Below are positions 6,914 to 62,696 of a stretch of 64,000 bases of DNA, piece after piece (positions within the stretch are counted from its first letter, which is position 1; every line of letters starts with the position of its first letter). The notes under the pieces were generated by a model that had not been told where the DNA came from, searched no databases, and saw only the letters and a program-made list of their open reading frames with translations. Position numbers and translations under genes: made by a program. The stretch lies in IMG/VR virus record IMGVR_UViG_3300033995_001164, positions 245,178 through 309,177 of that record; one strand, 5' to 3'.

Positions 6914-7576
6914 ATGATTAAGATAGAAAAACATAGAAAAGTTTGGATTGTATCCGACACTCACTTTGGACATAAGAATATATGTCGAGGTGTAACGGCA
7001 TGGAGATTACCTGATGGGTCAATTCCTGAAAGTCAAACAAGAGATTTTGAAACTATTGGACAGATGAACGACATTATTGTGAATAACATTAATAGTGTTG
7101 TTGGTCAAGACGATGTTTTAATTCACTTGGGTGATTGGAGTTTTGGCGGCTTTGAAAATGTAAAAATTTTTAGAGATAGAATTGTATGTAAAGAGATTCA
7201 CCTTATATTAGGGAATCACGACCACCACATTGAGAACAACCGAGAGGATTGTCAAGAAATGTTTGCAAGTGTAAATCACTACACAAAATTGATGTATAAA
7301 TTCGATACTTTGGTTTTAATGCACTACCCTATTGATTCTTGGGATGGATTAAACAAAGGACACATCCACTTACACGGACATTGTCATCTACCTCAACAAA
7401 AAGTATTTGGTAAAGGAAGGAGAATGGATGTTGGAATTGATGGTAATATGTTTTTTATGCCATACTCGTTAGATAATGTTATTAAGATTGTTAAAACGAG
7501 AGAAATTCTTTCTAATATGGATGATGACCACCACACAGATGAAGTAATGACCGATGAAGGTCGAAAAAGAAAGTAA
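6914..7576 (+). CDS. calcineurin-like metallophosphoesterase
   Basis: SDTHFGH, HLGD, GNHD, HGHCH motifs. Confidence 0.9.
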   Translation: MIKIEKHRKVWIVSDTHFGHKNICRGVTAWRLPDGSIPESQTRDFETIGQMNDIIVNNINSVVGQDDVLIHLGDWSFGGFENVKIFRDRIVCKEIHLILGNHDHHIENNREDCQEMFASVNHYTKLMYKFDTLVLMHYPIDSWDGLNKGHIHLHGHCHLPQQKVFGKGRRMDVGIDGNMFFMPYSLDNVIKIVKTREILSNMDDDHHTDEVMTDEGRKRK

Positions 7577-8907: not shown

Positions 8908-9754
8908 AATTTTAATTATTGTAGGAGTAGTGTTATTGTTTATTGTAGGAGTTAGTTCTTGTAAAATTGCGGACTCAGCGGAAGTCGCATTAGTAGTGAA
9001 TCAGATTGGAAACGACAAGGGGGTTCCAAATATTGAAATGGCGTCGGGTCTTATTATGTATTTCCCACCAACACAAGATGTGTATATGTATCCAACATCA
9101 GTTCAACATAAAGTATGGACATCATCAGTAGATGAAGATTCACCAACAGATGAACATATTGATGTAACTTCGGGTGATGGTGCCACTTTTGGATTGGATG
9201 TTGCAATTAACCTTCAATTAAAACGAGAATCAGCGACAATGTTATTCACAAAATATCGTGTAGGTATGGAAGAATTAATTGAAACAAGAGTTCGTAATAT
9301 TGTAAGAAAAGAATTATTAGATAATGCGGTTAGTTTCGCATCCGATAGTTTACTCCAACATAGAAATGTATATGAAGCAAATGTCACAAGAACTTTGGAA
9401 AAAGCATTAGAAAAAGAAGGGTTCATATTAAATAACATCGCAGTCTTAAAAATGGATATTCCTGCGTCTTATAGAAAGGCAATTGAGACTAAAATTAAAG
9501 TAATCCAAGAAACGGCAACGATTAAATCTCAAACAATTCAAGCAGAACAAACGGCACTTAAGAAAGTTGCGTTGGCGAAAGGTAATTATGAAGCGGCATT
9601 ATACGACGCCAAAACAAAAGAGATATTATCTCAACCTAAATTGTTAGAGTTATACAGAGCAGAAACTGAAAGAGTATGGGCTGAAAAAGGTAAATCTCCT
9701 TACGGACAAAACAATGTTTTTGGTTCTACATCCGGAATACTTCTTAATAGATAA
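8900..9754 (+). CDS. SPFH/Band 7 (prohibitin-like) membrane protein
   Basis: N-terminal TM/lipobox-like segment (VSSC), Band-7-like core, AIETK..AEQ coiled coil. Confidence 0.85.
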   Translation: MSRILIIVGVVLLFIVGVSSCKIADSAEVALVVNQIGNDKGVPNIEMASGLIMYFPPTQDVYMYPTSVQHKVWTSSVDEDSPTDEHIDVTSGDGATFGLDVAINLQLKRESATMLFTKYRVGMEELIETRVRNIVRKELLDNAVSFASDSLLQHRNVYEANVTRTLEKALEKEGFILNNIAVLKMDIPASYRKAIETKIKVIQETATIKSQTIQAEQTALKKVALAKGNYEAALYDAKTKEILSQPKLLELYRAETERVWAEKGKSPYGQNNVFGSTSGILLNR

Positions 9755-9815
9755 AAAAAAAATAAAATATTTTAAAAATCCCCATTTATTGGGGATTTTT
9801 TTTTATATTTGCATC

Positions 9816-10895
9816 ATGAAAATTGATATAGAAATAATAGACAGATACGTGAGTGAAGGATTGATTGAGAAAAACCCTCATCCAACACTTCCAATTGCAA
9901 TATATAATTACTCAAGACAAACTCAGTTTGAGGGTAAATGGGATAATATTACCAAAAATTGTCGAGGACTTGTTTTGGATAATGATGGTAATGTCGTTGC
10001 CAAACCATTTGGTAAATTCTTCAATATGGAAGAACATGACCCAAGTGAAATCCCAAATGAAACTTTTGAAGTGTTTGAGAAAATGGATGGGTCGTTAGGG
10101 ATTTTGTTTTGGTATGAAGGACAATGGATTTTTGCAAGTAAGGGTTCATTCACTTCAGACCAAGCAATTAGAGGTAGAGAAATATTAAAAAAATATGACA
10201 TCCAACCAGTTCCAAAAGGGTACACCACATTAGTAGAAATAATTTACAAAGAGAATCGTATTGTTTGTGATTATGGTGATGATGAAAGTTTGGTAGTACT
10301 TACTATGATTAGTAATGTTTCAGGAAAAGAATTTGATTATTCTTCTTTGATTCAAGTTTGTGAAGTTGTTGGGTTTCCGGTTGTTAAACGATATGATGGG
10401 ATTGATGATTATAAGACCCTCAAATCAATTATCAAGGATAATCAAGAAGGTTTTGTCATAAGATTTAGAAGTGGGTTTAGAATGAAAATAAAGGGAGAAA
10501 ATTATGTTCGTCTCCATAGAATCTTAACTGGGTTTTCGAATATTAATATTTGGGAAGTGTTGAAAGATGGTAAAGATATAAATGAATATTTGGATAGTGT
10601 TCCGGATGAATTTGACAAGTGGGTTAAAAATGTTGTTAAAGATTTAAGATATTCATACTTCCAAATTGGTGAAAGGGTTGGAAAAACATTTGACTACTAT
10701 ATGTATGGTAAATACAACGACAAAGAACCGGTTACCGACAGAAAATCATTCGCCGAATGGGTGATGACACAAGATAAATTTGCTCAACCAATTTTATTTA
10801 AAATGTTTGATAAAAAAGATTATTCTTCCTATATTTGGAATCTAATACGTCCAACATATAGTAAACCATTTTGGCAAAAAGATAGTGAGTCATGA
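9816..10895 (+). CDS. T4 Rnl1-family RNA ligase
   Basis: CRGLVLD, KPFGKFFN, motif I EKMDGSLG, EGFVI, KIKG; true start 9816 follows the TATATTTG box. Confidence 0.9.
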   Translation: MKIDIEIIDRYVSEGLIEKNPHPTLPIAIYNYSRQTQFEGKWDNITKNCRGLVLDNDGNVVAKPFGKFFNMEEHDPSEIPNETFEVFEKMDGSLGILFWYEGQWIFASKGSFTSDQAIRGREILKKYDIQPVPKGYTTLVEIIYKENRIVCDYGDDESLVVLTMISNVSGKEFDYSSLIQVCEVVGFPVVKRYDGIDDYKTLKSIIKDNQEGFVIRFRSGFRMKIKGENYVRLHRILTGFSNINIWEVLKDGKDINEYLDSVPDEFDKWVKNVVKDLRYSYFQIGERVGKTFDYYMYGKYNDKEPVTDRKSFAEWVMTQDKFAQPILFKMFDKKDYSSYIWNLIRPTYSKPFWQKDSES

Positions 10896-14582: not shown

Positions 14583-15332
14583 ATGGATTATATTAAAATT
14601 TATAATAAGATTACTGATAACGGAAAAGATAGATTATTAACCGGTTATACTGAAACTCATCACATAATACCTAAATGTATGGGTGGAACTAATGATAGTT
14701 GGAATTTAGTTAAATTAACCGCGAAAGAACATTTTATTTGTCATTTATTATTATGTGAGATTTATCCTAAAAACCGAAAATTAAGAATGGCGTTGTGGAA
14801 TATGTCTAATGTTAATAGAGATTATCAGGAAAGATATCAAGTATCGGGTAAATTATATGAAATTATTAGAAAAGAATACTCTGAAAGTATTAGTGGTAAA
14901 AATAATCCAAGATATGGGATAAAACTAACAGATGAGACCAAACAAAAAATAAGTAATAGTCGGATTGGTAAATATGGTGGTGATAAAAATCCATTTTTTG
15001 GTAAAACTCACACAGATGAAACAAAAGATAAATTAAGTGTTAGTAGTTCAAAAAATAAACATTCTGAAGAAACTAAAAAGAAAATGTCTTTAACCCGTAA
15101 AGGGAAACCATCAGGACGAAAAGGTAAAGTTAATTCTGAAGAACATAGAAACAAAATTAAAGAGAGTTTGAAAAAAGTAGGACACTCCAAACCATCTTCC
15201 AAAAAATGTAATATTGATGGGTTAGTTTTTAATTCGGCGGTCGAAGCTTCAAAATTTTTTAATATGCCTGATAGTAGTGTTAGAGATAGAATAAGAAATA
15301 AAAACTTCCCAACTTGGATTTGGTTGGAATAA
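14583..15332 (+). CDS. free-standing HNH homing endonuclease with NUMOD3 repeats
   Basis: ETHHIIPKCMGG..NLVKLTAKEHFICHLLL; KNPFFGKTHTDETK repeats; directly after thyA. Confidence 0.88.
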   Translation: MDYIKIYNKITDNGKDRLLTGYTETHHIIPKCMGGTNDSWNLVKLTAKEHFICHLLLCEIYPKNRKLRMALWNMSNVNRDYQERYQVSGKLYEIIRKEYSESISGKNNPRYGIKLTDETKQKISNSRIGKYGGDKNPFFGKTHTDETKDKLSVSSSKNKHSEETKKKMSLTRKGKPSGRKGKVNSEEHRNKIKESLKKVGHSKPSSKKCNIDGLVFNSAVEASKFFNMPDSSVRDRIRNKNFPTWIWLE

Positions 15333-21682: not shown

Positions 21683-21820
21683 ATGGAAAGAAAAACTTTA
21701 ATAATTAGTAAAGAAACCCACCAAAAATTAAAGGAATATTGTAATAATAATTCTATTAAATTAAATGATTGGGTTGAAAAATTAATACTTAACGAAATAA
21801 AAAAGTATGATGGAAAATAA
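21683..21820 (+). CDS. 45-aa ribbon-helix-helix-like protein (not in the ORF track)
   Basis: MERKTLIISKETHQKLKEYC..IKLNDWVEKLI, after an ATATTTAT box. Confidence 0.6.
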   Translation: MERKTLIISKETHQKLKEYCNNNSIKLNDWVEKLILNEIKKYDGK

Positions 21821-22463
21821 TTGGTATGTTTATAGACACATTAGATTGGACAAAACTGAGCCTTTTTATATCGGTATAGGTAATAAAAAAAATCACGCAA
21901 GAGCATATCAAACCAAACCTAACAGACGTAATGAAATTTGGAGAAAAATATCTAATAAAACCGATATTGAAATTGAGATTTTATTTGAAGGTTTAACTAA
22001 AAATCAAGCGTCTGAAAAAGAAAAAGAATTTATTAAATTATATGGTAGGAAAGATTTAAACACTGGGTGTTTATGTAATATGACGGATGGTGGTGATGGT
22101 ATATGGAATTGTGTTATGTCTGAAAACACTAAAGAAAAAATGAGACAATCCAAATTAGGGGATAAAAACCCCAATTTTGGTAAATCACCATCAAAAGAAA
22201 CCATATTAAAAAGAAGTAAATCTTTAACAGGCCAAAAAAGGTCTGAGGAAGAAAAACATAAACAATCATTAAGAACAATTAAATCAGGACAGGCAAAATC
22301 CACAGATGTTTACAACTTCAATAATAATGAGTATGTTGGGAGATTTCACTCTATTTCAGAAGCGTGTAGAATTTTAGGGTTTCACAAATCAAATAGTAAG
22401 GCTTGTTTAGTGGCTAAAGGTAAACGAAATCAAACTCACGGATATGTGTTTAAGTATGTTTAA
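21807..22463 (+). CDS. GIY-YIG-type homing endonuclease with NUMOD motifs
   Basis: YVYRH..FYIGIG, EKEFIKLYG, NMTDGGDG, KNPNFGK. Confidence 0.85.
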   Translation: MMENNWYVYRHIRLDKTEPFYIGIGNKKNHARAYQTKPNRRNEIWRKISNKTDIEIEILFEGLTKNQASEKEKEFIKLYGRKDLNTGCLCNMTDGGDGIWNCVMSENTKEKMRQSKLGDKNPNFGKSPSKETILKRSKSLTGQKRSEEEKHKQSLRTIKSGQAKSTDVYNFNNNEYVGRFHSISEACRILGFHKSNSKACLVAKGKRNQTHGYVFKYV

Positions 22464-23609: not shown

Positions 23610-24311
23610 ATGAAGATTTCGCTAATCTCTGATACGCATAATAAGCACAAACAAATAACCGGAGATTTACCTGGTGGAGATTTACTACTTCATAGTGGTG
23701 ATATATCATCTATGGGATACGAACATGAAATCAGAGAGTTCTGTAAGTGGTTCAACAACATCGAAGGTTATACTCACAAGATTTTCATTGCTGGAAACCA
23801 CGATTGGGGATTCCAAGACAATGCTGATAAGGTGAAAGAAATTTTGGATTTCTACAGTGGAATTACTTATCTTCAAGATAGTGAAGTTAAAGTTAAAATT
23901 GGGGATGAAAGAGAAGTAAAAATCTATGGTAGTCCTTACCAACCAGAATTTCATGGATGGGCATTTAACTTACCTAAAAATGGAATTGAATTATCGGGTA
24001 AATGGGAAGGAATCCCTGATGACACTGATATCCTATTAACTCACGGACCTGCGTTTGGAATATTAGATACCGTTGAAGGTAGAAGACACGATAATTTGGG
24101 TTGTGAATTATTAGTTGAGAGATTACGAATTATAACCCCTAAAATTCATCTTTGTGGTCATATTCATACAGGTTATGGTTATGTTAGAAAAGGAGATACT
24201 CACCACTTCAATACTGCGGTTTTAAATGAAAGATATACTTATACTCAAAAACCAATGACCATCGATTGGAATCCTGATACTAATGAAGTTGAATTTCCTA
24301 GTATCGACTAA
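23610..24311 (+). CDS. metallophosphoesterase (MPPED-like)
   Basis: SDTH, HSGD, AGNHD, THGP, GHIH. Confidence 0.9.
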   Translation: MKISLISDTHNKHKQITGDLPGGDLLLHSGDISSMGYEHEIREFCKWFNNIEGYTHKIFIAGNHDWGFQDNADKVKEILDFYSGITYLQDSEVKVKIGDEREVKIYGSPYQPEFHGWAFNLPKNGIELSGKWEGIPDDTDILLTHGPAFGILDTVEGRRHDNLGCELLVERLRIITPKIHLCGHIHTGYGYVRKGDTHHFNTAVLNERYTYTQKPMTIDWNPDTNEVEFPSID

Positions 24312-27908: not shown

Positions 27909-29625
27909 TTAACGACCTTTAATCATTGAAATCCCGTGTTTTAAGAATTCTTTTGCCCGCGGGGACACATGATTCATTAAATAAACCTTTTCAATGTCTT
28001 TAACTAATTCCTCCCCATGCTCATTTTCTTTATAAAGTTCAATAATTTTATCCATCGCTTTATTACATTCTTTTTTTGTTTCGTCAAAATAGTTGTAAGG
28101 TTTGAATGATTTAAGATGGTTCATGATTTCTGATGCCAGATGTTCACCACCATCAGAAACTTTTGGATGCAATCTAAGTGTTTTCAATAGTTCTAATCTA
28201 TCAACTAAACCATTAATACCGTTTTTCCTAATTGACACTCCCTCAATATAATCTTCCGCGTCGTCATCTCCCATAATCTCGTCTAATGACCTAACATTTC
28301 CACCATGGCAGAATTTTCTATCTTCTTTTTCTTCAGATTGTTCCATCATGTAAAGTTTTTTGATGGATTTAATTTCTGATTCTGTAATTGTAAATCTTTT
28401 AGTTCCCATATCTATAAATATAATGATAAATATATCGTTACTTCGTAAGTTTAAAATTAAAATAAAATAACTCCTTGTTGGAGAGGTTATCTTTTAATAT
28501 AATTTTTGAGAATCATTGAAAAGTCTTTTCATTTTAGATTCAATTAAATTTATTTTTTCTTGGTCCGAGTCGGAAACTTCAAAATTCTCCGCCTTAATTT
28601 GTCTCACTTCTTCTTGCATTCTTTGATATCTCATTATCATATCATTATACAATCTTGCCTTTTCGTCTTGGGTTAAATTTGCCATAGTTTTGTGTTTTTT
28701 TATAAATGTATAATTATTTCTTAAATTGTAATTAGTTATTCTCTTTTTTATGTTTTTTCCATTCTAACCAAAACGCAACCATAACTAAAATATTCATTCC
28801 ACAAGATGCAATAATTTCATAAATGTCTTTATATAGATTCATTGTTAGATGAACGTGACCAACAACCCAAAATGGAACTGCCAAATTGGAACCTACCCAA
28901 ACAATAAGATATTTAAGGAATCTTATATTGTTATTTATCATTTCGTTCAATTATATTAAAGTCAGTATCATACATTCTGTACCTAAAACCAGTATTGTCG
29001 TTATTGATACCAATATAAGGTAATAATTTTCTAATATGATGGTCAATTAAATAATATTGGTCTAATTGAAATTTATCCCAATAATTATCTCTATTTACTT
29101 CAGGGTCATTCAAATAAATGTCTAAAATTAACCAATCACTTGTAATACTACTTTCACTTTCAAAATAATGAACATCTATATTTCCAATAACAGGATATAT
29201 GTTTTTTATAATATCACTATTGAGTAGTTTTTGTAATGATTTTCTTTGATTTATATCTATCATATGTAATATTCTATTGTGTTAACAGGTATCTTGAAAG
29301 TTTCAACAAACCATTCTTTAAATCCTTCTTTCCAATTATCATTAAAATAACCTTCTAATGAGTTAAGAAGTCCTTGGTCTTCAACATACAACATTGGACT
29401 TAATGGTTTTCGGTAATCTGATGCTCCGGTCCAATAGTCTTCACCATATAACCTGAACAATGTTTCATCATCCATATAATCACCTAAATAAAATTCAATT
29501 GCGTCTTGTTCCTGACCCCAATCATCAGTTAAACGAGTCCAATTAATATTTTCAATATCCAAAGTGTTGTTTAGGTAATTTTTAACCGTTTGATTTAATT
29601 TACTTTCTGTTATAATGTATTTCAT
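27909..29625 (-). CDS. five small genes (27909-28409, 28494-28685, 28732-28950 membrane, 28931-29263, 29260-29625); first and last carry ITE leaders
   Basis: ORF track; MGTKRFTITESE and MKYIITESKL. Confidence 0.6.
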
Positions 29626-29634
29626 AATTTACTT

Positions 29635-29852
29635 AATTTGTATTGTTCCTCCACCAGACTTTTTTTTCCGAAATAAATCAATGTGGGTTGTTGTCACCTC
29701 CAATTTGTAATGTTCCTCCACCTTTTTCCTTTTTCGATGTAACGCAAAAGCGTTGTTGTCACCTCCAATTTGTAATGTTCCTCCACCAATAAACACGGCT
29801 CAAATATTCATCAATAGTTGTTGTCACCTCCAATTTGTAATGTTCCTCCACC
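29635..29852 (-). CRISPR. CRISPR-like array beginning inside the 3' end of gene 29759-30106
   Basis: Three identical 36-bp repeats GTTGTTGTCACCTCCAATTTGTAATGTTCCTCCACC (29687-29722, 29752-29787, 29817-29852) plus a partial copy at 29635-29655; unique spacers of 31, 29 and 29 nt. Confidence 0.85.
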
Positions 29853-30106
29853 CACGCTTTCGTTAGGTCTTCTATTTCCTCATTATTTAACTCAAAAAAG
29901 GATTTCAAAAATGACCAAATATGAGTATAAGAGACATGAGCAACCCCATTTTTTTCATTATAGTCAAACATAACTTCACCATCTTTCATAAAGAATATGT
30001 GGTTAGGGTATTCGTCTGTTTTATATGGTTTCAAATCACCATATTCGGTGTTAAGGTATTTGAGAATACCTCGATTTTTTTGACTTTCTGTTATAATGTA
30101 TTTCAT
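29759..30106 (-). CDS. ITE-leader protein whose C-terminus is encoded by repeat plus spacer
   Basis: ...WVEEHYKLEVTTT (repeat) IDEYLSRVY (spacer) WWRNITNWR* (next repeat, shifted frame). Confidence 0.8.
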   Translation of the reverse strand: MKYIITESQKNRGILKYLNTEYGDLKPYKTDEYPNHIFFMKDGEVMFDYNEKNGVAHVSYTHIWSFLKSFFELNNEEIEDLTKAWVEEHYKLEVTTTIDEYLSRVYWWRNITNWR

Positions 30107-32392: not shown

Positions 32393-33421
32393 TCAATCAA
32401 CATTATTTTTTAAATATTTTTCAACAAATTTTTCTTCATATCTTTTTGTAAAAATAATTTGTTTTGTTTCATACAATTCTTTTAATTTTTTAGACGATAA
32501 ATTAGGTGTATCTCTTAATTTGTATGTAAGATTATTTTCATCACAAAATTTAATTGCCGATATTTTTTTTCTAACCACCGAATCACTATACCAAAGTTTT
32601 TTTGGCTTAATTTCTATTAAATATTTGTTTTTTAATATAAAATCAGCGGTATAAGTTCTGTTATTACCTTTATAATCAGTATAATTTATCTGATACATAT
32701 TAGATTCTGCATTAATCCACTCAATGTTATTTTTTTCAATAACATTAATCATGTATGATAATTCTTTAATACTTCTAAAAAACCAATTATTATACCATCC
32801 TGACCAACCATTACCGGAACCAACAGGACTTGGTTTTCCAAACATTGGGTTATTCTCTCCCGAACTATTTTTAGATTGTTTTATTTTTAATTGTTCTAAT
32901 TTAACATTAGCAATTTCGGTTCCATATTTTTCAACCCAAACATCATAGACAGATTTTCCAAACATAGGGTTATTCTCTCCTGAAGTATTTTTAGATTGTT
33001 TTATTTTTAATTTTTTCATTTTTTCTTCCGCAACTTCAACTCCATATTTATCAACCCAATAATAATAATAAGTAGAGTCCCCAAACATAGTGACATTACT
33101 TAATGATAAAATTCTCATTTTTTCCCTAAATTCTTCTGTTTTATATACTGAAAAATCTTTTTTTTCTCTCATTTTTTGTTTGGTGTCTTCAGTATGTTTT
33201 TTATTAAAAAATGGATTTAACTCACCAAATTTTCCAAACATAGGGTTATTGTCGCCAAGAACTCGTTGTTTCATACGTTCTCTCCTATCTTCGGTTATAG
33301 TTAATTTTAACCCACAACTTTTACAATTACTATTTTTGTTATCCGCTTTTATCATATTGTATTTGTTAGTGTAACTTATTGTTACACCACAAATAGGGCA
33401 TTTTCTTGTGAGATTTGACAT
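32393..33421 (-). CDS. homing endonuclease: zinc finger, NUMOD3 repeats and TnsA-like PD-(D/E)xK nuclease
   Basis: CPICG..CKSC; GENNPMFGK repeats; FRSIKEL, YTADF, IEIKP. Confidence 0.8.
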   Translation of the reverse strand: MSNLTRKCPICGVTISYTNKYNMIKADNKNSNCKSCGLKLTITEDRRERMKQRVLGDNNPMFGKFGELNPFFNKKHTEDTKQKMREKKDFSVYKTEEFREKMRILSLSNVTMFGDSTYYYYWVDKYGVEVAEEKMKKLKIKQSKNTSGENNPMFGKSVYDVWVEKYGTEIANVKLEQLKIKQSKNSSGENNPMFGKPSPVGSGNGWSGWYNNWFFRSIKELSYMINVIEKNNIEWINAESNMYQINYTDYKGNNRTYTADFILKNKYLIEIKPKKLWYSDSVVRKKISAIKFCDENNLTYKLRDTPNLSSKKLKELYETKQIIFTKRYEEKFVEKYLKNNVD

Positions 33422-44361: not shown

Positions 44362-45315
44362 CTAATTAATTTTAACACCCTTCTCAAGTGTTTCCTCAAG
44401 ATAATCTATAAAAGCTTTTGTTCTATCTTCTTTACCGTGATAATAATTACCATAACCTATTAGTTCTCCACTTTGGTCTGGTAATGGTTTTATTTCTTTT
44501 ACACCATTCTCAATTATATCACCAATCCAATCAACAACGACCTCATTCAATTTTTTTGTTTTTTTAACTCCATTTTTAATCACACCATCAATTCTTCCTT
44601 TGTGTTGATATACATCATAGTAAGTTTCATTAACACCCTTGTCAATCACCTTATCAATTATGTCTTCTCCCACATATTGTCGTGGGTTAGAACTTTTAAC
44701 ACCATTTTCAAGTGCATCATCAATGTCTCCGGTATATTCACGAGATTCTAATTTTGAAGTCATTTTCACTCCATCTTGTATGACAATTTCAATAACACAA
44801 GAACCATCCATTTGTAATGATTTGTTGGTTAGTTTCACCCCTTTAGTTTTCTTCACACCATCTTGTATGATGTCATCAACCTCACCTTCAGTAATGTTCA
44901 TTTCCAAACAGGTTTCTTTTACTCCGCCTTTAATAACATTTTCAACCCAACTTGTATTATCTTCCGGGTTCCAACAAGTTTCTTTAATCCCATTCTCAAA
45001 AACCTCCATCAGATTATATGATGGTGTTTGAGATGGTGACGCGGTATTCTTAGAACCATTCATTACATTATCTTCTACCCATTTTGTGATGAGGTGTTGG
45101 TTTTGAACAACCTCCAATGAGGCATACCCAAAAAGATTTTTAAAGAAATTAAAATTATACCACAGGGTTTTACTTTCAGTTAATTCTATCACCCATTGTT
45201 TGGACTCCGTAAAGATTAACCAAGTGGAACCATTATGATTATATGTGTCAACACCTTGGACAGAAGAATTAATTAAGGTGTTTATTATTTTTCCCATAAT
45301 CTTTTTATTAGACAT
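44362..45315 (-). CDS. homologue of the 62683 family with about 9 degenerate ~22-aa C-terminal repeats
   Basis: N-terminal WLIF..KQWVIEL..LWYN domain, then [V/I]xxxxxxG[V/I]KxT plus ~10 variable residues. Confidence 0.75.
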   Translation of the reverse strand: MSNKKIMGKIINTLINSSVQGVDTYNHNGSTWLIFTESKQWVIELTESKTLWYNFNFFKNLFGYASLEVVQNQHLITKWVEDNVMNGSKNTASPSQTPSYNLMEVFENGIKETCWNPEDNTSWVENVIKGGVKETCLEMNITEGEVDDIIQDGVKKTKGVKLTNKSLQMDGSCVIEIVIQDGVKMTSKLESREYTGDIDDALENGVKSSNPRQYVGEDIIDKVIDKGVNETYYDVYQHKGRIDGVIKNGVKKTKKLNEVVVDWIGDIIENGVKEIKPLPDQSGELIGYGNYYHGKEDRTKAFIDYLEETLEKGVKIN

Positions 45316-46127
45316 TATTTTTAAATATATTTGGTTGAATCTCAGCATCTTCAAAAGATTCTGTGGATACAAACTCACTTTTCAAATAATTAATTACATG
45401 TTCCATCATCTCGTAATCTTTAAAATCTCCGTTTTTATGTCCAGCCTTCATTAATAAAGACATACCCGCAGCCAACATCATTGTTGATTCCTTAACAGAT
45501 AATGCCTCTTGGTCTTTTGGGAATCCAATGTCAAAGTAGTTTCTATCGTTTTCACGTCTCCACGTTACACCAATTGTTAATCCATCCATTTGTTTCTTTT
45601 TTATTTGACAAAGATACGAATATTATTTTATATTTCCAAAAAAGTATGAGCAATAAAAAACCCACTGATTTGTGATAGGATTAATAATCCAATAAGATTC
45701 TTTGTATTCATAGCACACAAATCCCTCAATGGAATTATTTAGAACTTTATTAATTAACTTTTTCAAACAGTTCAAAGAATTTATCCTTATTGTTTTTTTC
45801 AGGGGGGAATATAAATGACTGAACATGGAATGATACAAATCCCATCTCACTACCGTAAGTCATTTTAAAATAATCATTAATCTCCGTACTATATTCATGT
45901 TTACTTTTCTTCATTCCATTGTGGTTATCAAAATGGATGTCAACTCCAACCAAATATTTATATATCGGGGAGAAGTTTATTGGGTCATATATAATTTGTT
46001 CCCTATATCCTGTGGAAACAACATCAATAATCTCGGGGCACATCTTCAGTATGACAACCTTTAATGTATCGGGGACTTCAATTTTCTTATCGTTCGGGGA
46101 TGGAAATAAAGTATCTTCATTTTTCAT
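45308..46127 (-). CDS. three hypothetical proteins (45308-45589, 45623-45850, 45750-46127)
   Basis: ORF track. Confidence 0.5.
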
Positions 46128-46177
46128 ATACTACTTTTTTACAAAGATATAACAAAGATTCCACATAACCAAAAAAA

Positions 46178-46240
46178 GGGTTGGGATTCCATCGAACGAA
46201 GTGAGTGACCGGACGAAGTGAGTGACCGGACGAAGTGAGA
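46178..46240 (-). repeat. dispersed intergenic element, copy 1 of 5, with an internal 17-bp tandem repeat
   Basis: GGGATTCCATCGAACGAAGTGAG core; other copies at 48545-48585, 49996-50030, 50579-50620, 51362-51402. Confidence 0.9.
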
Positions 46241-46773: not shown

Positions 46774-47058
46774 TTTAAATTGTAATGATTCCCAACTTGC
46801 TCCCCTGTTAGAGTTAAAATGTTATGTTGTGACTATCTTTCAAATTGTGATGATTCCCAACTTTGAATTTCGTTGAGGCTAACTTACAGCGGTTGCGACT
46901 ACCTTTCAAATTGTGATGATTCCCAACTCAAAATGTTATTCAATTGGGGATTTTATGTTGTAACTACCTTTCAAATTGTGATGATTCCCAACCCTATTAA
47001 CGAGGTTTATATCGGTGTCCTCGTTGTGACTACCTTTAAAATCGAGACACATCCCAAT
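46774..47058 (-). CRISPR. CRISPR array associated with the TnpB/Cas12-like gene
   Basis: Consensus (+) GTTGTGACTACCTTTCAAATTGTGATGATTCCCAAC at 46826-46861, 46892-46927, 46957-46992; half-degenerate copies at 47023-47058 and 46774-46796; spacers 29, 30, 29 and 30 nt. Confidence 0.92.
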
Positions 47059-47255
47059 AATGGCTTTTCAAATGAAATTGTGATAGTCTATCCGTTCTCG
47101 GATAATGAGGTTTTGAGACCCCTAGCCGCCTAACCGTTCCGGCAATCACACGTTGACCGTGTTCTTTTACCCGGGTTATATCTGCATACAGTGTTTTAAC
47201 CTTTTAACGTGTTACACACACGCGAGTTACCAATATGTTTAAGAACTTTTTTATT
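47059..47255 (-). ncRNA. putative omegaRNA/tracrRNA-like scaffold
   Basis: Non-coding and GC-richer; hairpin 47089-47104; 47141-47150 reads UGUGAUUGCC on minus and can pair with repeat GGUAGUCACA. Confidence 0.7.
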
Positions 47256-47261
47256 ATGATA

Positions 47262-47269
47262 CAAAGATA
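47262..47269 (-). promoter_or_regulatory. TATCTTTG box driving the scaffold and array
   Basis: 5 nt after the nuclease stop codon, pointing into the non-coding region. Confidence 0.7.
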
Positions 47270-47274
47270 AGTAA

Positions 47275-48477
47275 TTATTCTCTAACTAACAAACTTTCTC
47301 TGATATTTTTTGCTGCGTTTATATCTCTATCGTGGTGTTCCTCACAAGACTTACAGGTCCATTCCCTTTGGGATAACTTTAACTCAGTATTTATATCCCC
47401 ACAGTTAGAACAAGTCTTACTTGTATTACGGGGGTCAATCCTATTAAATTCAATTCCTTTTGAATTACAAACACTTCCCAAATAATCGACAAATGAACGA
47501 ATCCCGATTCTTGCAGTGGATTTAGCCATATGTTTATTCTGTAACATAAATGACAAACGAATATCCTCAACTTGTATTTTAGAAAACTTACCTTTAGTTA
47601 AAACACCAACAACATATCTGTGATATTCTTTTCTAATATTATTTAATTCATTCTGTAATCTACCCTTCTTCTCAATTACTCTCCAATAATTTTTGGATTT
47701 AGGTTTACCCTTGTTTAATCTGTTCTTACGAGATATACTCTTTTGAATAATTGAAATCTTATCTTCCAATTTTTTAATCCTCTCAATTGGTACCTGATAT
47801 TTAAGTCCTTCGGATGTAATTGCCATATCTTTAATACCTACATCAATTCCCAATGATTTACCCGAACTATTAATCTTAACAATTTCAGTATCCTTTAAAT
47901 CCAATGTTAAAGATAAATACCAATTACCATCAGACTTCCTATGGATTGACATTAACTTTGGTGTAGACCCTTTGAATTGTTTATGAAACTTACATTTTAT
48001 AATTGGATTTATCCCAACTTTTTTAAGTAAAGTAGGAGCAAACCTAATTTCATTATTATCCCAATCCAAACTTAAACTTCCACGACTAATACTATTTGAA
48101 TTAGTCGTTAATTTCAATATATTCGTTTTTTTCTTATACGAAGGTTTTCTTGATTTTGGTTTTTTTCTGAAATTTTTAATTGATGTGACCAAAGATTCAG
48201 AAACATATTCCCTAAATATTGATGGAACATTATCAAACCAATTAATCGTTGAAAGATAATTAGAGAAAAGAGATTTACTCTTTAAGTTCGGAGCAGGAAA
48301 GTCCTTAAAATCTTTCCCATCAATAAATTCACTAACCAAAAGATTATATCCCCCTCTTAATTTATTACCAATATCAAATAACCATCTCTTTTGTTTATCA
48401 TCCGGGTATATCCTATACTCAACTGATACTCCAACATAAGATGGACCCTTTTTTCTTTCAACCAAAAAATGATTCAT
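47275..48477 (-). CDS. tnpB: TnpB/Cas12f-like RNA-guided nuclease, 400 aa
   Basis: YRIYP N-terminus, RuvC-I GIDVG, RuvC-II VED, zinc finger CSNC/CKSC, RuvC-III DRDINAAKNI; start 48477 follows TATATTTG at 48497-48504. Confidence 0.93.
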   Translation of the reverse strand: MNHFLVERKKGPSYVGVSVEYRIYPDDKQKRWLFDIGNKLRGGYNLLVSEFIDGKDFKDFPAPNLKSKSLFSNYLSTINWFDNVPSIFREYVSESLVTSIKNFRKKPKSRKPSYKKKTNILKLTTNSNSISRGSLSLDWDNNEIRFAPTLLKKVGINPIIKCKFHKQFKGSTPKLMSIHRKSDGNWYLSLTLDLKDTEIVKINSSGKSLGIDVGIKDMAITSEGLKYQVPIERIKKLEDKISIIQKSISRKNRLNKGKPKSKNYWRVIEKKGRLQNELNNIRKEYHRYVVGVLTKGKFSKIQVEDIRLSFMLQNKHMAKSTARIGIRSFVDYLGSVCNSKGIEFNRIDPRNTSKTCSNCGDINTELKLSQREWTCKSCEEHHDRDINAAKNIRESLLVRE

Positions 48478-48598
48478 ATATAATTTATTTAGAAAGCAAA
48501 TATAAAACAAAGAATTCAAATCACCAAATATATAATGAAAAAAAGGAATGGGATTCCCTCGAACGAAGTGAGAAACCGGACGAAGAGCACTATACGAA

Positions 48599-49929
48599 TT
48601 ACTCATCAGCAGGGATATTATTTAACCAATTATTAAAATATTGTGAAGTATCCACATGATTTAATCCAAATAGTTTTCTTATACTATTGTATAACTCAGA
48701 CTTCATAGATATTTTACTAACACTATGTGGTCTCGAACCAACCTTAACTCCATTCACAATATAATAATAACTAAACATCTTAAACGCCCTCTCAAAATGG
48801 TTACTCTCTTTCGATACCGATAAGGTGGGGTTATCACCAACAATAGAATTAAGATATTCATGAACCAATTTTTCCATTATGTTGTTTCATTAATATCGGA
48901 CATCACATAACCTTCAGGTGGAAAATGAACCAAACATCTTCCACTCTCTTTATAACAAGTACAATCCAATTCATCATCAATCTCAAATGAAGCACTGCTC
49001 ACCTTATCTTCGTAATTTGTGAAGAAATCATTAAAGATTCCCGTAATGGTCATTTTCTTTTTCACCTTACTTATTTTTTGAATAGTGAAACCCTTTGAGG
49101 GTCTATTGTTATCACAATGTTATTACTTGAATCCGCATACGAAGCAATGTCATCATCCAATAACATTTTATGGATATTATCATCATAATAAATCACCACA
49201 TCATTGTATGAGTAATGTGGGTAATGATTTTTGATTGGTTCCAATAGAACAACATCAGTACATTGACTAATGGCACCGTCCATAATGGATTTAATTAGTT
49301 CATAATAATATTGATTTCGGTTTTTCTTATACTCGTTCAATATATCAATTCGAGATAAGGGTTCAGTTGTTTTTGGTTTGGAGTTCCACATCATTTTTTA
49401 CTATTTCTATTAATTTTTTAAGACATTACATATTAAAGCTAACAATGGTAATGATAAGAGTAATAATGAAATTACTAACCCCCAATAATCTTTTATTTTT
49501 TGCATATTTCTATTAATTTTTTAAGTTTTGCTTCTTAACAATTTCTATCAACTTGACCAAACATTCAAGTTCTGCTTCTTCGTAAGTTTGAAAAAAAGTA
49601 TCCCATATTAATCCGCCTATTCTAAAATCACTATTATATTCAGTGATATTATCTTGGATATACCAACAATAAGGTTGTTGATATTTGTTTTCTTTAGTAA
49701 TCCAACTATCTAAATTATACTTCTCTCTAAACCATCTAAATGCTTGTTGGTAAAGTGGTGCTACAAATGTTGTTTTAGATTCTAATCTAAATTGAAAAGG
49801 AGCAGATATAGTTTCATTTGATATATAAACCTCTCTATCTTTACCTACATAATATCCTAAACAAGGTTCATCAAATCCTAATTCTTTTAAAGCTAATGCT
49901 TGTTCGTAAGGTATAAATTCTTTTTCCAT
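48599..49929 (-). CDS. four hypothetical proteins (48599-48877, 48877-49065, 49071-49394, 49513-49929)
   Basis: ORF track; 49513 has LKELGFDEPC..APLYQQAFRWFREKY..YEEAE. Confidence 0.6.
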
Positions 49930-50081
49930 AATTTTTTATTTAGAAAGCAAAGATATAATAAATTTTTTATTCCACCAAATATATAATAAAAAAAAGGGTT
50001 GGGATTCCATCGAACGAAGTGAGTCCGAACTGGGAGAGACCATAATTTGTTAATCCCAAAATTATTCCATATATTTAACCC

Positions 50082-50564: not shown

Positions 50565-50738
50565 ATTCTAAAAAAAAAGGGGATGGGATTCCATCGAACG
50601 AAGTGAGTCCGGACTGGAAGGTATACGAATATCCCCTCCAATTAAAATATTAATCAAATCACCTTCAGTAAGTCTAACAATATTCCCCATATTAAATTTA
50701 TTTATTATAAATACTCAACAATTAGGGTATTTATTAAT

Positions 50739-51334: not shown

Positions 51335-51431
51335 ATTGATAAATACTTGACTATCAAAAAAGGGCTGGGATTCCATCGAACGAAGTGAGTCCGGACTGGA
51401 AGGTATATGAATAACCCCGCCCATTATAATA

Positions 51432-54772: not shown

Positions 54773-55825
54773 ATGAATAAACCCACCCATCCTGAAATTA
54801 TTGAGAAAGTATTGCTTCGTCTTATTAGAACGGAGTATCCTTCCGTGGAGGGAACAAGGATTGTTCATATATTTGGTAAGGGCTACAGTAAATATCATGT
54901 TTATGTTGGGGTGAGTTATACGGATGTTATTAGAAATAATTACTCTGAGTTTATACCATATGTTAATAACTTAGGTAAATACATTTTACCTCATCCGGAT
55001 ATTATTAAAGTCGTGGGATTTTATACTATATCTGAGTAATCTATTATATGGTCCGGGGCGTTAATCCCCAACCCCTTATATTTATTTAGTATGAAATATA
55101 TTATACCCGAAGAAAAACTTAAGAAACTAATTAAGTCATACATTATGTCTCGTTACAATTCAGTTAGTAAGGTTTACTTTACAAAAAGAAATGTTCATAC
55201 ACCGAGTTTTTTTGAAGGTAATCCCGTTCGAAACATTACTTTAACAATTATTAATATTGAGTTTAATTCCGGTGAGATGGTTCACGGTTATTTAAGTGCA
55301 TCACCATCCCGAACTTTAAGAACAATTCAAAACGATATTAATTCCATGTTTAATCTTGGTATTGGTGACGGCCCCTATTCTTTATGGGATGTTGATGGAA
55401 CTGTGGTTCATTAATCTATTATATGGTCCGAGGCGTTAATCCCCAACCCCTTATATTTATTTAGTATGAAATACATTATAACAGAAAACCAATTAGATAG
55501 ATTCATTAGTAAATGGTTATCCAAGGAATATGCAGATTTGGAAATTTATGACCACGATAATCAACTTTGGTGTTTATATGTTGATAAAGATGGTGAGGTA
55601 ATATTTCTTTATCATACCAAAGACAATGAGTTGTATGTCTCAAAGGATGTTATGAAATTTTTAATCGATATGTTTTCCATTGATGTCGAACAGACTAAGG
55701 ACATACTTAGAGAATGGTTTGAAAAGTACACCGGTTTGAATTCTTATAAGGTTTTATCTTGGGATTTTTTTGATGCGGATTGGAAAAAAATTGTTAGATG
55801 GGAAACAAAAAAACGATTATCTTAA
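54773..55825 (+). CDS. three small genes (54773-55039, 55091-55414, 55466-55825); last two with MKYII leaders
   Basis: ORF track and promoter boxes. Confidence 0.65.
55037..55098 (+). repeat. 62-bp promoter module duplicated at 55412-55473; related copy at 59697-59725
   Basis: TAATCTATTATATGGTCCGRGGCGTTAATCCCCAACCCCTTATATTTATTTAGTATGAAATA, one mismatch between copies. Confidence 0.9.
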
Positions 55826-58159: not shown

Positions 58160-58247
58160 TTAATTTGTAATGTTCCTCCACCTAATTAAAACGGTATAAA
58201 ATCCATAGTTTGTTTCCGTTACCCTTAAATTATAATGTTCCTCTATC
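58160..58247 (-). CRISPR. single-spacer CRISPR-like unit at a gene 3' end
   Basis: 36-bp repeat 58212-58247, 29-nt spacer 58183-58211, partial repeat 58160-58182 matching the 29.7-kb repeat. Confidence 0.65.
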
Positions 58248-59515: not shown

Positions 59516-59777
59516 TATTGATAAATATATGGTCAATAGAAAACCTCCTCGTCGATAATAAGGTTCCGGACTTATATTGTGGGTTTATAAGTCTCAGGAC
59601 TTATATGGTTTTTATCATATAATGAGGAATATATGTCTTTTATCATATATTACACATTTTGGTAATATTATGAAGAACACTTATTATAATCTATCATATG
59701 GTCCGGGGCGTCAATCCCCTACCCCTTTTTTTGTTTATTCATTTCTTTTTTATATCTTTGCCGACAAATATAATACT

Positions 59778-60092: not shown

Positions 60093-60641
60093 ATGACAGA
60101 TAAACTAAAGCATAGAATCATTAACTACCTAAATAAAGAATATTCCGGGATTGTTGATTATGAAACGGATGATTGGAAAGAGCATATATTCTTTATGAAA
60201 GACGGGAAAGTTCTTAATTATTACAGTAAAATAAATGGGGTTGTTTATATCTCTTATTCTAAAATTTGGTCATTATTAGAAACCTTTTTTGGATTAAATT
60301 ATCAGGAAGTACAAGACCTAACAAAAATATGGGTGGAGGGGCATCACAGATTTAAGGTAACAACAACGGTCGAAGAAAGAGGAGAATTGATTGACTTGGT
60401 GGAGGAACATCACAGATTAAACGTAACAACAATCGTGCCGAATTGCTTTGTTCACTGGGACAAGGTGGAGGAACATCACAGATTAAACGTAACAACAACA
60501 AGACATGACCGTTATGGAAATGTTACACCGGAGGAACTTCACAAATTAAAGTCAACAACAACCTTCGGTTGTTTTATCGTTGATTTACCTTTGGTAGAAA
60601 ACCATTACAAATTAAACTACCCCGCTAACGGTGAAATATGA
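60093..60641 (+). CDS. 29759-family protein with a translated repeat-spacer tail
   Basis: Units VEEHHRLNVTTT plus 9-10 variable residues. Confidence 0.8.
   Translation: MTDKLKHRIINYLNKEYSGIVDYETDDWKEHIFFMKDGKVLNYYSKINGVVYISYSKIWSLLETFFGLNYQEVQDLTKIWVEGHHRFKVTTTVEERGELIDLVEEHHRLNVTTIVPNCFVHWDKVEEHHRLNVTTTRHDRYGNVTPEELHKLKSTTTFGCFIVDLPLVENHYKLNYPANGEI
60332..60617 (+). CRISPR. in-frame CRISPR-like array
   Basis: 36-bp repeats at 60332, 60398, 60464, 60527 and a partial at 60593; spacers 30, 30, 27 and 30 nt. Confidence 0.75.
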
Positions 60642-60725: not shown

Positions 60726-61430
60726 ATGGATATGATAAAAAACAAATTAACTATTGTAATCCCCTCTAAGAATGAGAGTGAGATTATAGACAAAACACTT
60801 ACATTAATTAATAAACAATTTGGTATTTATAAAACTCGTGTGATTATTGCTGATTGTTCTGATGATAATACCCGGGACATTATACTATCAGGTAAATACC
60901 CAAGATTAAGGATTGAAATCATTGATGGTGGACTACCGAGTGTTGCAAGGAATAACGGAGCTGAATTAGTTAAAACTCCTTATGTTTTATTCTTGGATGC
61001 TGATATCTTTTTAATGTCCCCATTCATAATATCTAACACATTTAACACCATTAAAAGTAAAGACCTATATCTTCTTACCACTAAGTTTAGAGTTGAAGGA
61101 GTTTATTCATTTGTCTTCCCGGTGTTTGAGTTCTTTAGGGATTTAACAATTAAGACATCCCCTTGCGCTATTGGTGGATTTATGTTATTTAAAATGTCTG
61201 AATTTAATCTTCTTGGTGGTTTTAATAATGATGATAAGTTTGCTGAAGATTTTCATCTTAGTATGAAAGTTAATCCCCTCCGGTTTGGCGTGTCTAATGA
61301 GAAAGTATATACAACCGATAGACGATTTAAAAAGAAAGGATTATGGTATATGATTAAAATGGCGTATCTCTCTAATAAAAATAAACATAACCCCGACTTC
61401 TTTAAAGATGACCACAACTATTGGATATAA
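60726..61430 (+). CDS. family 2 glycosyltransferase
   Basis: IVIPSKNE, SDDNT, ARNNGA, LFLDAD, AEDF. Confidence 0.9.
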   Translation: MDMIKNKLTIVIPSKNESEIIDKTLTLINKQFGIYKTRVIIADCSDDNTRDIILSGKYPRLRIEIIDGGLPSVARNNGAELVKTPYVLFLDADIFLMSPFIISNTFNTIKSKDLYLLTTKFRVEGVYSFVFPVFEFFRDLTIKTSPCAIGGFMLFKMSEFNLLGGFNNDDKFAEDFHLSMKVNPLRFGVSNEKVYTTDRRFKKKGLWYMIKMAYLSNKNKHNPDFFKDDHNYWI

Positions 61431-62171: not shown

Positions 62172-62696
62172 ATGGAAATAGATTTATCAAAATATAGTAT
62201 TGGGGAACTTATTGAATTACAGGACAAGATTGATAATACAATACATAACTACAAGGATGGTTATTTGTATATCTGTAATGTTCGTTCATATGGTCACAAT
62301 TGGAGAGACAATTGTATTCATAACATTCATACTCTTCAGCGACTTTGTCATAAGTATGGTGGTGAGGATGGTATTGTTGATGTCTATTCTAATAACCCCG
62401 ACCTTTCTATGATTGAGAACTATGGTGACCTTATGTATATCGTCTCCGAGTCCGACTATACTAAGTGGAAAGATTATGAATATCTTAAAGGTTTTATCCC
62501 CACCATTTCTAAACGATTGGATGAATGGGAGAATAGAGATAATATTCCTTTTCACTCTCGACCATCGTTTGCTCCGATGTATAGTAGAGAAGAGTTAAAT
62601 AATATGGTGGAAAAACTTGCTCACTATGATATGTCTTTTGTTGCTCCCACCCCTTATAAACCGAATGAAAATTTAGACACAGATGATTACAGATAA
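62172..62696 (+). CDS. hypothetical protein
   Basis: Start MEIDLS after the TATCTTTG box. Confidence 0.6.
   Translation: MEIDLSKYSIGELIELQDKIDNTIHNYKDGYLYICNVRSYGHNWRDNCIHNIHTLQRLCHKYGGEDGIVDVYSNNPDLSMIENYGDLMYIVSESDYTKWKDYEYLKGFIPTISKRLDEWENRDNIPFHSRPSFAPMYSREELNNMVEKLAHYDMSFVAPTPYKPNENLDTDDYR

Follow-up and report, generated by a model that had tools for sequence, protein, structure and literature searches.

How a regular array of identical repeats, separated by unrelated inserts, comes to stand at the 3' end of a protein-coding gene is the question raised by a locus in IMG/VR virus record IMGVR_UViG_3300033995_001164. The DNA analyzed in the present study, hereafter the window, comprises 64,000 nucleotides (nt; positions 245,178 to 309,177), the last 64 kb of a 309,177-nt contig, and the coordinates of the array are given on this window. 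The carrier of the array is a ~310-kb jumbo phage without a close relative among deposited phage genomes, and it probably infects Bacteroidota. The array lies on the minus strand (29620-29852), and we conclude with high confidence that it is of the CRISPR type and grows by the polarized insertion of a repeat together with captured DNA. As an explanation of the locus as a whole, we favor, and consider probable, a CRISPR-type mini-array on a jumbo phage, with a 36-bp repeat overprinted on the last 12 codons of a conserved protein domain.

Read along the minus strand, the array consists of three full 36-nt repeats and a fourth, truncated one, with intervening spacers of 29, 29, and 31 nt. New units are added at repeat 1 (29817-29852), whose product, VEEHYKLEVTT(T), makes up the end of helix 3 and the C-terminal tail in the domain. 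Repeat 1 is followed by spacer 1 (29788-29816, 29 nt), the newest; by repeat 2 (29752-29787), an exact copy; by spacer 2 (29723-29751, 29 nt); by repeat 3 (29687-29722), also an exact copy; and by spacer 3 (29656-29686, 31 nt), the oldest. The full repeats are identical at 36/36 positions with a period of 65 nt, the spacers have no similarity to one another, and no match arose in 100 shuffles of the window that preserved dinucleotides, so that the repeats and spacer lengths described in the original prediction are confirmed. The terminal repeat (29620-29655) is repeat-like only in ~21 nt (29635-29655), where 20 of the first 21 nt match and the remainder is unrelated, and this truncation is conserved across the family. 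The terminal repeat merges with the start codon (ATG, 29623-29625) of the next gene on the minus strand, which accounts for the feature having first been drawn from 29635. That gene (29260-29625), directly after the terminal repeat, is a distant array-less paralogue with the N-terminus MKYIITES… and the C-terminus …EWFVETFKIPV…. Thus, two general properties of CRISPR arrays are present, namely at least three near-identical direct repeats (23-47 bp) at regular spacing and unique spacers of near-constant length. A third is absent, because the variable end adjoins or overlaps conserved coding sequence and there is no non-coding AT-rich leader. The repeats fold weakly on their own, and an Rfam search revealed no match to CRISPR-DR or other RNA families.

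The array is base-for-base identical in four independent IMG/VR assemblies (contigs of 97-309 kb), and its alleles occur in k141 MEGAHIT, NCBI, and Logan assemblies; an assembly artefact, the danger named in the original prediction, has therefore been ruled out. The phage is present in the JGI samples 3300033995, 3300034018, 3300035438, and 3300042869 and in the ENA series ERZ272720xx. The genome has 30% G+C and many small paralogous genes, and encodes a Clp protease, a thymidylate synthase, an Rnl1-type RNA ligase, a lysin, and homing endonucleases. A DNA search of INPHARED with the window, the array, and the array of a TnpB-derived nuclease described below returned no matches, as did a protein search of the same collection with the gene family, and no tRNA was found in a tRNA search.

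The manner of growth is seen when strains are compared. Three alleles were observed at this locus, carrying spacer 3 alone (s3), a different spacer and spacer 3 (sX-s3), or all three spacers of the window (s1-s2-s3), so that the gene-distal spacer is common and the gene side differs. The first allele, in L133, a k=31 Logan contig that spans 36-nt exact repeats and is to be read with that caveat, is 100.000% identical to the window in flanks of 1,452 and 3,094 nt; exactly the two gene-proximal units are absent and the 31-nt distal spacer is kept. In L146, a strain 91-99% identical to the window, one different proximal spacer precedes the same distal 31-nt spacer. The same polarity was observed elsewhere: L014 and L016 have two distal spacers in common and one and three proximal spacers, respectively, and L144/L145 (7 contigs) equal L134 (24 contigs) minus one proximal 66-nt unit, with 0 mismatches in 6.6 kb. 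At the protein level, the series P0113/P0103/P0099, P0131/P0117, and P0100/P0098/P0094 differ in steps of 22 amino acids (aa) and share their C-terminal units. Spacer turnover is fast relative to flank divergence, as seen in the window, L133, and L146 and in L134 and L144. Units are thus added at one end while older spacers are common at the opposite end, as in CRISPR arrays in general. This polarized pattern is the signature of leader-end acquisition, with the gene body occupying the place of the leader and the old units remaining distal, beside the conserved truncated repeat.

These comparisons bear directly on the most conventional reading of a repeat inside an open reading frame (ORF), namely an ordinary protein tandem repeat that grows by duplication and has fast-evolving linkers without any capture of DNA. 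Such a repeat would suit the sister arrays described below, some of which are in frame with a period of 22 aa, and the protein motif retained by old units. However, the repeats are 36/36 identical with mutually unrelated linkers, flank-identical strains differ by whole units with unrelated inserts, one insert is a 29/29 copy of another phage's gene, and the array is out of frame. This candidate is already contradicted by these tests and receives almost no weight from us, and the exclusion of ordinary tandem duplication, first argued from the unrelated linkers, is strengthened by the strains that differ by whole units.

The origin of the captured DNA could be traced for one spacer. When IMG/VR was scanned for exact matches to the core of spacer 1, four contigs of the phage itself and one other contig were retrieved; in the latter, the whole spacer matched at 29/29 nt on the sense strand, inside a 132-aa ORF. 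Because this ORF overlaps the start of the large-terminase gene, it encodes a putative small terminase (TerS). The target contig belongs to a widespread ~30-kb phage family unrelated to the jumbo phage, and the target gene is a mosaic module confined to that phage lineage. Six contigs from six samples carry the protospacer without a mismatch; these samples include the ENA series ERZ272720xx, in which the jumbo phage is also present, and JGI 3300042465, in which a relative of the jumbo phage is present. By our own estimate, rather than by computation, the chance of a 23-mer match in the scanned collection is well below 0.01. Thus, very probably, at least one spacer has been copied from a rival phage, and the foreign derivation that is typical of CRISPR spacers has been found for spacer 1 only. 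This spacer also has the sense and the reading frame of the target gene (IDEYLSRVY in both; L046:3420-3448 and 29788-29816), which is either a one-in-six coincidence or a hint. The protospacer is flanked by …GTAGAAC on the 5' side and by TAGAAATAAA… on the 3' side, a single case from which no motif can be inferred; the 3' flank resembles the N5-TAAA motif of Flavobacterium columnare with an offset of 1 nt, possibly by chance.

The protospacer search suggested in the original prediction therefore succeeded for spacer 1, and spacers 2 and 3 had no protospacer in limited searches. Scans with spacer 2, spacer 1 of the sister array at 62.9 kb, and two spacers of the TnpB array gave no match. Neither did two spacers compared with JGI contigs, a collection that does not contain the jumbo phage itself, nor all collected spacers compared with 0.9 Mb from relatives of the target phage. 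Nevertheless, the recent insertion of units at the DNA level into a coding repeat, as originally predicted, is backed by the allelic series, the protospacer, the polarized gain at other loci, and the relation to the TnpB-array repeat described below. Relatives do vary in their inserts, as the s3 and sX-s3 alleles demonstrate, and spacer 1 does have a match outside the phage.

The repeat itself is part of a gene. The array-bearing gene (29759-30106, minus strand) belongs to a multi-copy phage family, and its codons 1-97 (29815-30106) form a conserved alpha/beta domain. Repeat 1 is translated as …AW-VEEHYKLEVTTT, the last 12 residues of this 97-aa domain. As foreseen, repeat 1 encodes the domain end and the 29-nt spacer 1 shifts the frame, so that the ORF stops at 29759 inside repeat 2; its last 18 codons are spacer 1 and repeat 2 read out of frame (…IDEYLSRVYWWRNITNWR and a stop). 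The 29-nt spacers disrupt the frame, so that no repeat other than repeat 1 is read in its proper frame. In an AlphaFold2 (AF2) model of the 97-residue domain, with a predicted local distance difference test (pLDDT) score of 95, the repeat forms the last turn of helix 3 and the C-terminal tail. Structure searches with this N-terminal domain model revealed no relative in the PDB and returned only uncharacterized phage proteins. The family has 92 detectable homologues, all metagenomic, none of which had a match in Pfam or PHROG.

In the alignment of these homologues, conservation extends through …WVEEHYKLxVTTT and is followed by 9-10 residues that are unrelated between homologues. Thereafter come WRNITN and a stop (the repeat out of frame), VEEHYKLK and a stop (the repeat in frame), or more full units. 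At least 20 distinct loci carry 2-8 units with a period of 65/66 nt, and their last repeat is truncated in the same way. Array-less paralogues in the window end in a homologous segment (…EWFEHRYQLPVSMVL, …EWFVETFKIPV…), and this shared C-terminus indicates that the repeat is native coding sequence and not a graft. More widely, small minus-strand genes starting at 29625, 30106, 35803, 36438, 36827, 42538, 42868, 51334, and 58501 encode proteins that begin with MKYIITES… and have a C-terminal W-[FV]-x-E-x-Y helix, a large superfamily of ~100-130-aa proteins of which only some members carry arrays.

Whether the repeat is maintained as protein or as nucleic acid was addressed with a synonymous-site test on a codon alignment of 22 distinct family genes. 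The Val codon of the repeat is GTG in 21/21 genes, and the Glu codon is GAG in 20/21, with GAA almost exclusive elsewhere in the gene. Two Thr codons are ACA in 14/15 and 18/18 genes. The middle codons of the repeat (His, Tyr, Leu, and Val) vary freely. The spacer begins with the third position of the last Thr codon, and all four bases occur there. The synonymous sites are thus frozen at both ends of the repeat, and these ends are constrained as nucleotides beyond the constraint on the protein. A constraint of this kind is expected if an integrase or an RNA-guided protein recognizes the repeat ends. The term "pseudo-repeat" used in the original prediction was apt in that the repeat is coding. 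It nonetheless undersells an element that is conserved in ~90 homologues with constrained ends and is therefore not a one-off accident.

The same test weighs on the possibility that the units are neutral scars, left where the Cas1-Cas2 of the host mis-integrates spacers into repeat-like coding sequence of the phage without any function. Ectopic integration at repeat-like sites is known from work in Escherichia coli. Moreover, the array breaks the frame and leaves 134 nt untranslated, and its use by an effector is only inferred. Scars, however, would hardly account for synonymous sites that are frozen at both repeat ends in 22 diverged genes against the codon preference of the gene. Nor would they account for a truncated terminal repeat conserved across ~90 homologues, for arrays on at least five paralogues in the window and in many phages, or for spacer turnover that is fast compared with flank divergence. 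We therefore consider neutral scars improbable.

A candidate effector is encoded in the same window, namely a TnpB-derived, Cas12f-like RuvC nuclease (47275-48606, minus strand; the true start is probably downstream of 48606). The gene matches Pfam PF07282 (2.5e-20) and PF01385, phrog_506 (1.7e-68), and PADLOC Cas12f (1.7e-31), its relatives of solved structure are TnpB (8iaz/8h1j) and LaTranC (9jfo), and the RuvC motifs GIDVG, VEDI, and DRDINAAKN are intact. It is followed on the same strand (46775-47274) by a conserved scaffold of ~215 nt (47059-47274) and then by an array (46775-47058). This array comprises a degenerate repeat (47023-47058), four spacers of 29-30 nt with three full 36-nt repeats between them, and a truncated repeat (~46775-46796); the first repeat retains the 3' part and the last retains the 5' part. 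An orthologue with 85% identity (L042), on the same contig as the gene-end array L016, has the same scaffold with a different repeat and different spacers. Both in the window and in L042, the end of the scaffold equals the 3' end (last 13-19 nt) of the phage's own repeat; the array therefore belongs to the nuclease, with the guide placed after the repeat, as in type V systems. Adjacency of array and effector, with the repeat equal to the 3' end of the scaffold, is thus found for the array at 46775-47058 and not for the gene-end array.

The two kinds of array have the same period and the same truncated last repeat, and their repeats are related. Compared in the sense orientation, the repeat of the array at 29620-29852 resembles the TnpB-array repeat with a gapped z of 6.0-6.5 (p <= 0.0005 against shuffles), and gene-end repeats in general give z values of 5-7 against the TnpB-array repeat of the window. 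The similarity that had been noticed by eye is therefore significant; the orientation of the relationship, however, is ambiguous, for reasons given below. When 185,579 species genomes were scanned for repeats of the TnpB-array type, a single locus emerged, the Cas13b array of Sphingobacterium hungaricum (strain KB22, NZ_MU158698.1), and the TnpB-array repeat (46826-46992) is 29/36 identical to this Cas13b repeat (L045). Such likeness points to a Bacteroidota host and to repeat mimicry. The pairing of a type V-like effector with a VI-B-like repeat is itself unusual. A search with the degenerate pattern of the gene-end repeat gave 0 matches in the 185,579 bacterial and archaeal species genomes, among which the host may be unsampled.

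The likeness to type VI-B repeats raises the possibility that the same array serves an effector of the host, either Cas13b of type VI-B or Cas9 of type II-C, and is read antisense or on both strands, in the manner of archaeal viral mini-arrays. Several observations would fit. The architecture of 36 + 30 nt and the GTTG…CAAC-like ends are those of Bacteroidota type VI-B, with 29/36 positions of the TnpB-array repeat identical to a Cas13b repeat. The reverse complements of gene-end repeats give z = 4-6.7 against the VI-B repeat, compared with ~1-2 in sense; for the array repeat itself against the Sphingobacterium VI-B repeat, z = 1.1 in sense and 4.0 in reverse complement (relatives up to 6.7). 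Read antisense, each spacer has a full repeat after it, as the CRISPR RNAs (crRNAs) of Cas13b and Cas9 require, and antisense spacer 1 is complementary to the target mRNA. The use of host Cas proteins by viral mini-arrays is, moreover, established (PMC11656645). On the other side, the gene-end repeat is found in 0/185,579 genomes, whereas known mini-arrays have repeats identical to those of the host, and PADLOC detected no cas13b or cas9 in the 64-kb window. The array lies inside a sense operon, with no antisense promoter detected in a scan that covered sigma-70-type sites only. Antisense transcription would place the newest spacer at the 3' end, opposite to the leader-first transcription reported for type VI-B (PMC8092290), and the phage has an RNA-guided nuclease of its own with a related array. 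Taken together, use by a host effector seems unlikely, though it is the main alternative.

The resemblance to the VI-B family would also suit RNA anti-CRISPR (Racr)-like decoys, in which repeats within abundant phage mRNAs sequester the Cas proteins of the host and the spacers are irrelevant. Solitary repeats or mini-arrays in phages can act as Racrs, according to PMC11656645 (see also PMC10651486). A decoy has no need for polarized spacer gain or for a perfect match to a rival phage, and no sampled host repeat is close to those at the gene ends; we regard decoys as very improbable.

Four more arrays of this kind occur in the window, at 58.2 kb (out of frame), 60.3 kb, 62.9 kb, and 63.96 kb (cut by the window end), and they reveal a second behavior with respect to the reading frame. 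The array at 58160-58247 (minus strand), at the end of a 451-aa protein with a C-terminal domain of the family type, has one spacer: a degenerate repeat 1 (58212-58247), a 29-nt spacer (58183-58211), and a terminal repeat out of frame. The array at 60332-60620 (plus strand) lies in frame within ORF 60093-60641 and has four full repeats, a truncated fifth, and spacers of 30, 30, 27, and 30 nt. The array at 62916-63207 (plus strand), in frame within ORF 62683-63207, is composed of VESALNCGVTTT units with four 30-nt spacers and a truncated terminal repeat; a 92%-identical strain has only the distal spacer in common with it. A paralogue at 63273-63734 (plus strand) has a degenerate in-frame array tail with a 22-aa periodicity. 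In a third paralogue (63731-64000, plus strand), the window ends at the first repeat (63964-); the full array is present in L134 (L134:10001-10672), and it is polymorphic by exactly one gene-proximal 66-nt unit between otherwise identical genomes. Finally, a 328-aa paralogue (44362-45348, minus strand) contains ~10 old 22-aa units, [VI][ED]xx[IL]xxGVKxT with ~10-aa linkers. Its motif is kept and its Gly, Val, Lys, and Thr codons vary synonymously, suggesting selection on the peptide in this oldest array. The paralogue looks like a former array that has turned into a protein repeat.

The arrays fall into two classes. In the frame-breaking class, the 23 spacers measure 29, 30, or 31 nt and the ORFs stop early. 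In-frame stops occur in 4/23 of these spacers, and each other frame has stops in 6-14/23. In the in-frame class, the 39 spacers measure 27, 30, or 33 nt, with no in-frame stop in any of them (0/39) and stops in 13-22/39 in each other frame. Given stops in ~45% of spacers in other frames, the chance of 0/39 is ~1e-10. Spacer lengths are multiples of three in 39/39 and 13/23 cases, respectively (p = 1e-5). The insertion that the original prediction called frame-blind is therefore frame-blind for the array at 29620-29852 and its class, whereas the sister arrays at 60.3 kb, 62.9 kb, and 63.96 kb are strictly in frame and stop-free. The in-frame arrays gain units with the same polarity. The 39 in-frame spacers have a codon-usage score of 0.082 ± 0.022, compared with 0.033 for random stop-free and 0.159 for true in-frame sequence. 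This intermediate score led us to reject the idea that the spacers are systematically in-frame pieces of genes, and it fits random capture followed by a filter against frame-breaking variants; random capture and subsequent loss of such variants is the simplest reading. In an AF2 model of a 174-aa in-frame protein, the tail is of low confidence (pLDDT ~50). When the frame is kept, the TGA at the end of the terminal repeat overlaps the following ATG. It is a possibility that translation through the array is selected via coupling to the next gene or via a function of the repeated tail.

We propose the following mechanism for a CRISPR-type mini-array overprinted on the gene end. Each new unit consists of one copy of the repeat and ~29-31 bp of foreign DNA and is added at the gene-proximal repeat. 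The insertion would be carried out by a Cas1-Cas2-type integrase supplied in trans, most likely that of the host, because the repeats belong to the GTTG…ACAAC 36-nt family of Bacteroidota type VI-B arrays. That such an integrase builds the array in trans is, in our opinion, rather likely. Type VI-B arrays are filled in trans by the Cas1-Cas2 of another system (PMC8092290), and the Cas12r of Thermus phages combines a lack of adaptation genes with polar spacer addition and mimicry of host repeats (bioRxiv 10.64898/2026.04.20.719267); by analogy with these two cases, borrowed host adaptation may reasonably be inferred. The array would then be transcribed with the operon and cut into guides, each composed of the 3' part of the repeat and a spacer. 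These guides might serve an RNA-guided nuclease, most likely the TnpB-derived type V effector of the phage (47.3-48.6 kb), which could cut the DNA of co-infecting rival phages in inter-phage competition. The assignment of the guides to the phage's own nuclease, directed against the DNA of co-infecting phages, is a tentative proposal, and we lean slightly against it. The anatomy of the sense strand fits a repeat-then-guide order, with a full repeat before every spacer and spacer 1 in the sense of the target mRNA; the reverse strand fits a guide-then-repeat logic equally well.

Several observations weigh against this explanation. First, the orientation is ambiguous: the antisense strand fits spacer-then-repeat systems, and reverse-complement gene-end repeats match the TnpB-array repeat of the second phage at 25/36 positions, with z up to 9.6. 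Second, the array is non-adjacent to the TnpB-like gene, at a distance of 17.5 kb, and cas1, cas2, and cas4 were not found by PADLOC and Pfam among the 95 ORFs of the window. Third, protospacers are few: exact matches of three further spacers were sought in IMG/VR without success, and the comparison of all ~75 spacers with ~1.3 Mb of fetched loci yielded nothing, leaving the protospacer of spacer 1 as the only one known. Fourth, a function purely at the RNA level does not explain why sister arrays are in frame and stop-free, or why old units keep a protein motif with synonymous variation.

A more far-reaching reading is that of dual-coded CRISPR arrays, in which the same 36 nt are both a CRISPR repeat and a structural protein motif, the 22-aa modules are made from captured DNA and possibly act as guides, the repeat was born from coding sequence, and the array of the TnpB nuclease came from this pool. 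In a large part of the family, a captured spacer would be kept only where it lengthens the reading frame. Array-less paralogues have a C-terminus homologous to the repeat, and this family may therefore record how a CRISPR repeat was born from coding sequence. We regard this wider proposal as rather doubtful at present.

Compared with known systems, the array at 29620-29852 combines familiar properties in a different setting. The mini-arrays of Saccharolobus portogloboviruses SPV1 and SPV2 and of prophages (PMC11656645) likewise have one to few spacers, a degenerate last repeat, and a spacer matching another virus, with a presumed role in inter-virus competition. Those mini-arrays, however, are intergenic, with repeats identical or near-identical to host arrays and spacers that target related viruses. 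Here, by contrast, the repeat forms the 3' terminus of a conserved phage gene, none of 185,579 genomes was found to carry it, and the target is an unrelated, co-occurring ~30-kb phage. In addition, the present phage has a candidate effector and several in-frame, translated sister arrays. Cas12r of the Thermus Lalka phages (bioRxiv 10.64898/2026.04.20.719267) and TranC (PDB 9jfo, LaTranC) resemble the present system in several respects: a small TnpB-clade RuvC nuclease followed by a short array without nearby cas1/cas2; spacer gain at one end, with the last spacer common to strains and host-like repeats that suggest adaptation in trans; and, as at the TnpB locus of the window, a scaffold or omega-like RNA region that closes with 13-19 nt identical to the repeat's 3' end. 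In those systems, the arrays adjoin the effector and are non-coding, whereas here the array stands at an unrelated gene's end, 17.5 kb from the effector, and at least five such arrays are spread over 35 kb.

The type VI-B Cas13b systems of Bacteroidota, such as that of F. columnare (PMC8092290), share the 36-nt repeats, the ~30-nt spacers, and thus the period, as well as the GTTG…ACAAC ends, the lack of adaptation genes of their own, and polarized acquisition. Unlike these systems, the window has no cas13b, the sense anatomy gives no Cas13b crRNA for the last or only spacer, and spacer 1 is identical in sense to the target mRNA. The likeness of the gene-end repeat to the VI-B repeat is weak in sense and moderate in reverse complement. 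Phage-borne repeat-like sequences are also known as RNA anti-CRISPRs or solitary repeats (PMC10651486); here, in contrast, spacers turn over, a protospacer exists in a rival phage, and no host repeat matches. A different kind of overlap between coding and guide sequence is found among transposons. In IS200/IS605 elements, the tnpB ORF overlaps at its 3' end with the omega-RNA of TnpB, and the guide comes immediately afterwards. As in the present array, a coding 3' end doubles as the end of a guide scaffold; here, however, the array-bearing gene is not a nuclease, and the guide region consists of expandable captured spacers and not of flanking DNA. No description of such coding arrays was found in the literature searched, the coverage of which was incomplete and does not prove novelty. 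A CRISPR-type array in which repeat and leader are coding sequence would appear to be a new variant, of a function that is known from mini-arrays and type V systems.

Other features of the window were also observed. Direct repeats of ~54 nt (…GGGATTCCATCGAACGAAGTGAG…), without an Rfam match, lie at 46165-46218, 48532-48585, 49983-50036, 50567-50620, and 51349-51402; two copies flank the TnpB module and one further gene, and the others adjoin small genes and homing-endonuclease-like ORFs. An intergenic repeat of ~46 nt with a GGGG…CCCC hairpin occurs at 55037-55082, 55412-55457, 59687-59732, and 63205-63250; all copies but one stand 9-23 nt upstream of family genes, and the repeat may be a promoter or terminator cassette. 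An Rnl1-type RNA ligase and three metallophosphoesterases are encoded on the plus strand (9714-10895, 6914-7576, 23610-24311, and 61408-62127), and one ORF of the window has a Csx1/CARF-like or cREC_REC match. It is possible that this set repairs RNA or degrades signal molecules and thereby counters an RNA-targeting defence such as Cas13b. The ORFs 14583-15332, 21807-22463, and 32393-33421 are paralogous; two of them were scanned singly and both had NUMOD3 homing-endonuclease motifs, and ORF 14583-15332 also carries an I-TevI-type DNA-binding domain. PADLOC PDC-S10 matches three ORFs of the window.

CRISPR arrays are treated as non-coding loci with a non-coding leader, and regularly spaced repeats within an ORF are usually taken for protein repeats by array finders and dropped. 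In the present study, a repeat inside an ORF displays three hallmarks of CRISPR, namely polarized unit gain among genomes that are otherwise identical, a shared trailer spacer, and a perfect protospacer in a rival phage. If this reading is true, virus-borne arrays would be under-counted, because arrays embedded in ORFs are filtered out. Likewise, a coding sequence would serve an integrase as leader and repeat, which would bear on the origin of arrays and on the path from TnpB to Cas12, and the in-frame sister arrays would be a natural case of captured DNA under selection for translation. If the arrays are indeed dual-coded and the TnpB array arose from the same pool, they would offer a concrete route for the TnpB-to-Cas12 transition inside a phage. 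Moreover, the locus provides a testable example of guided interference of phage against phage in freshwater jumbo phages.

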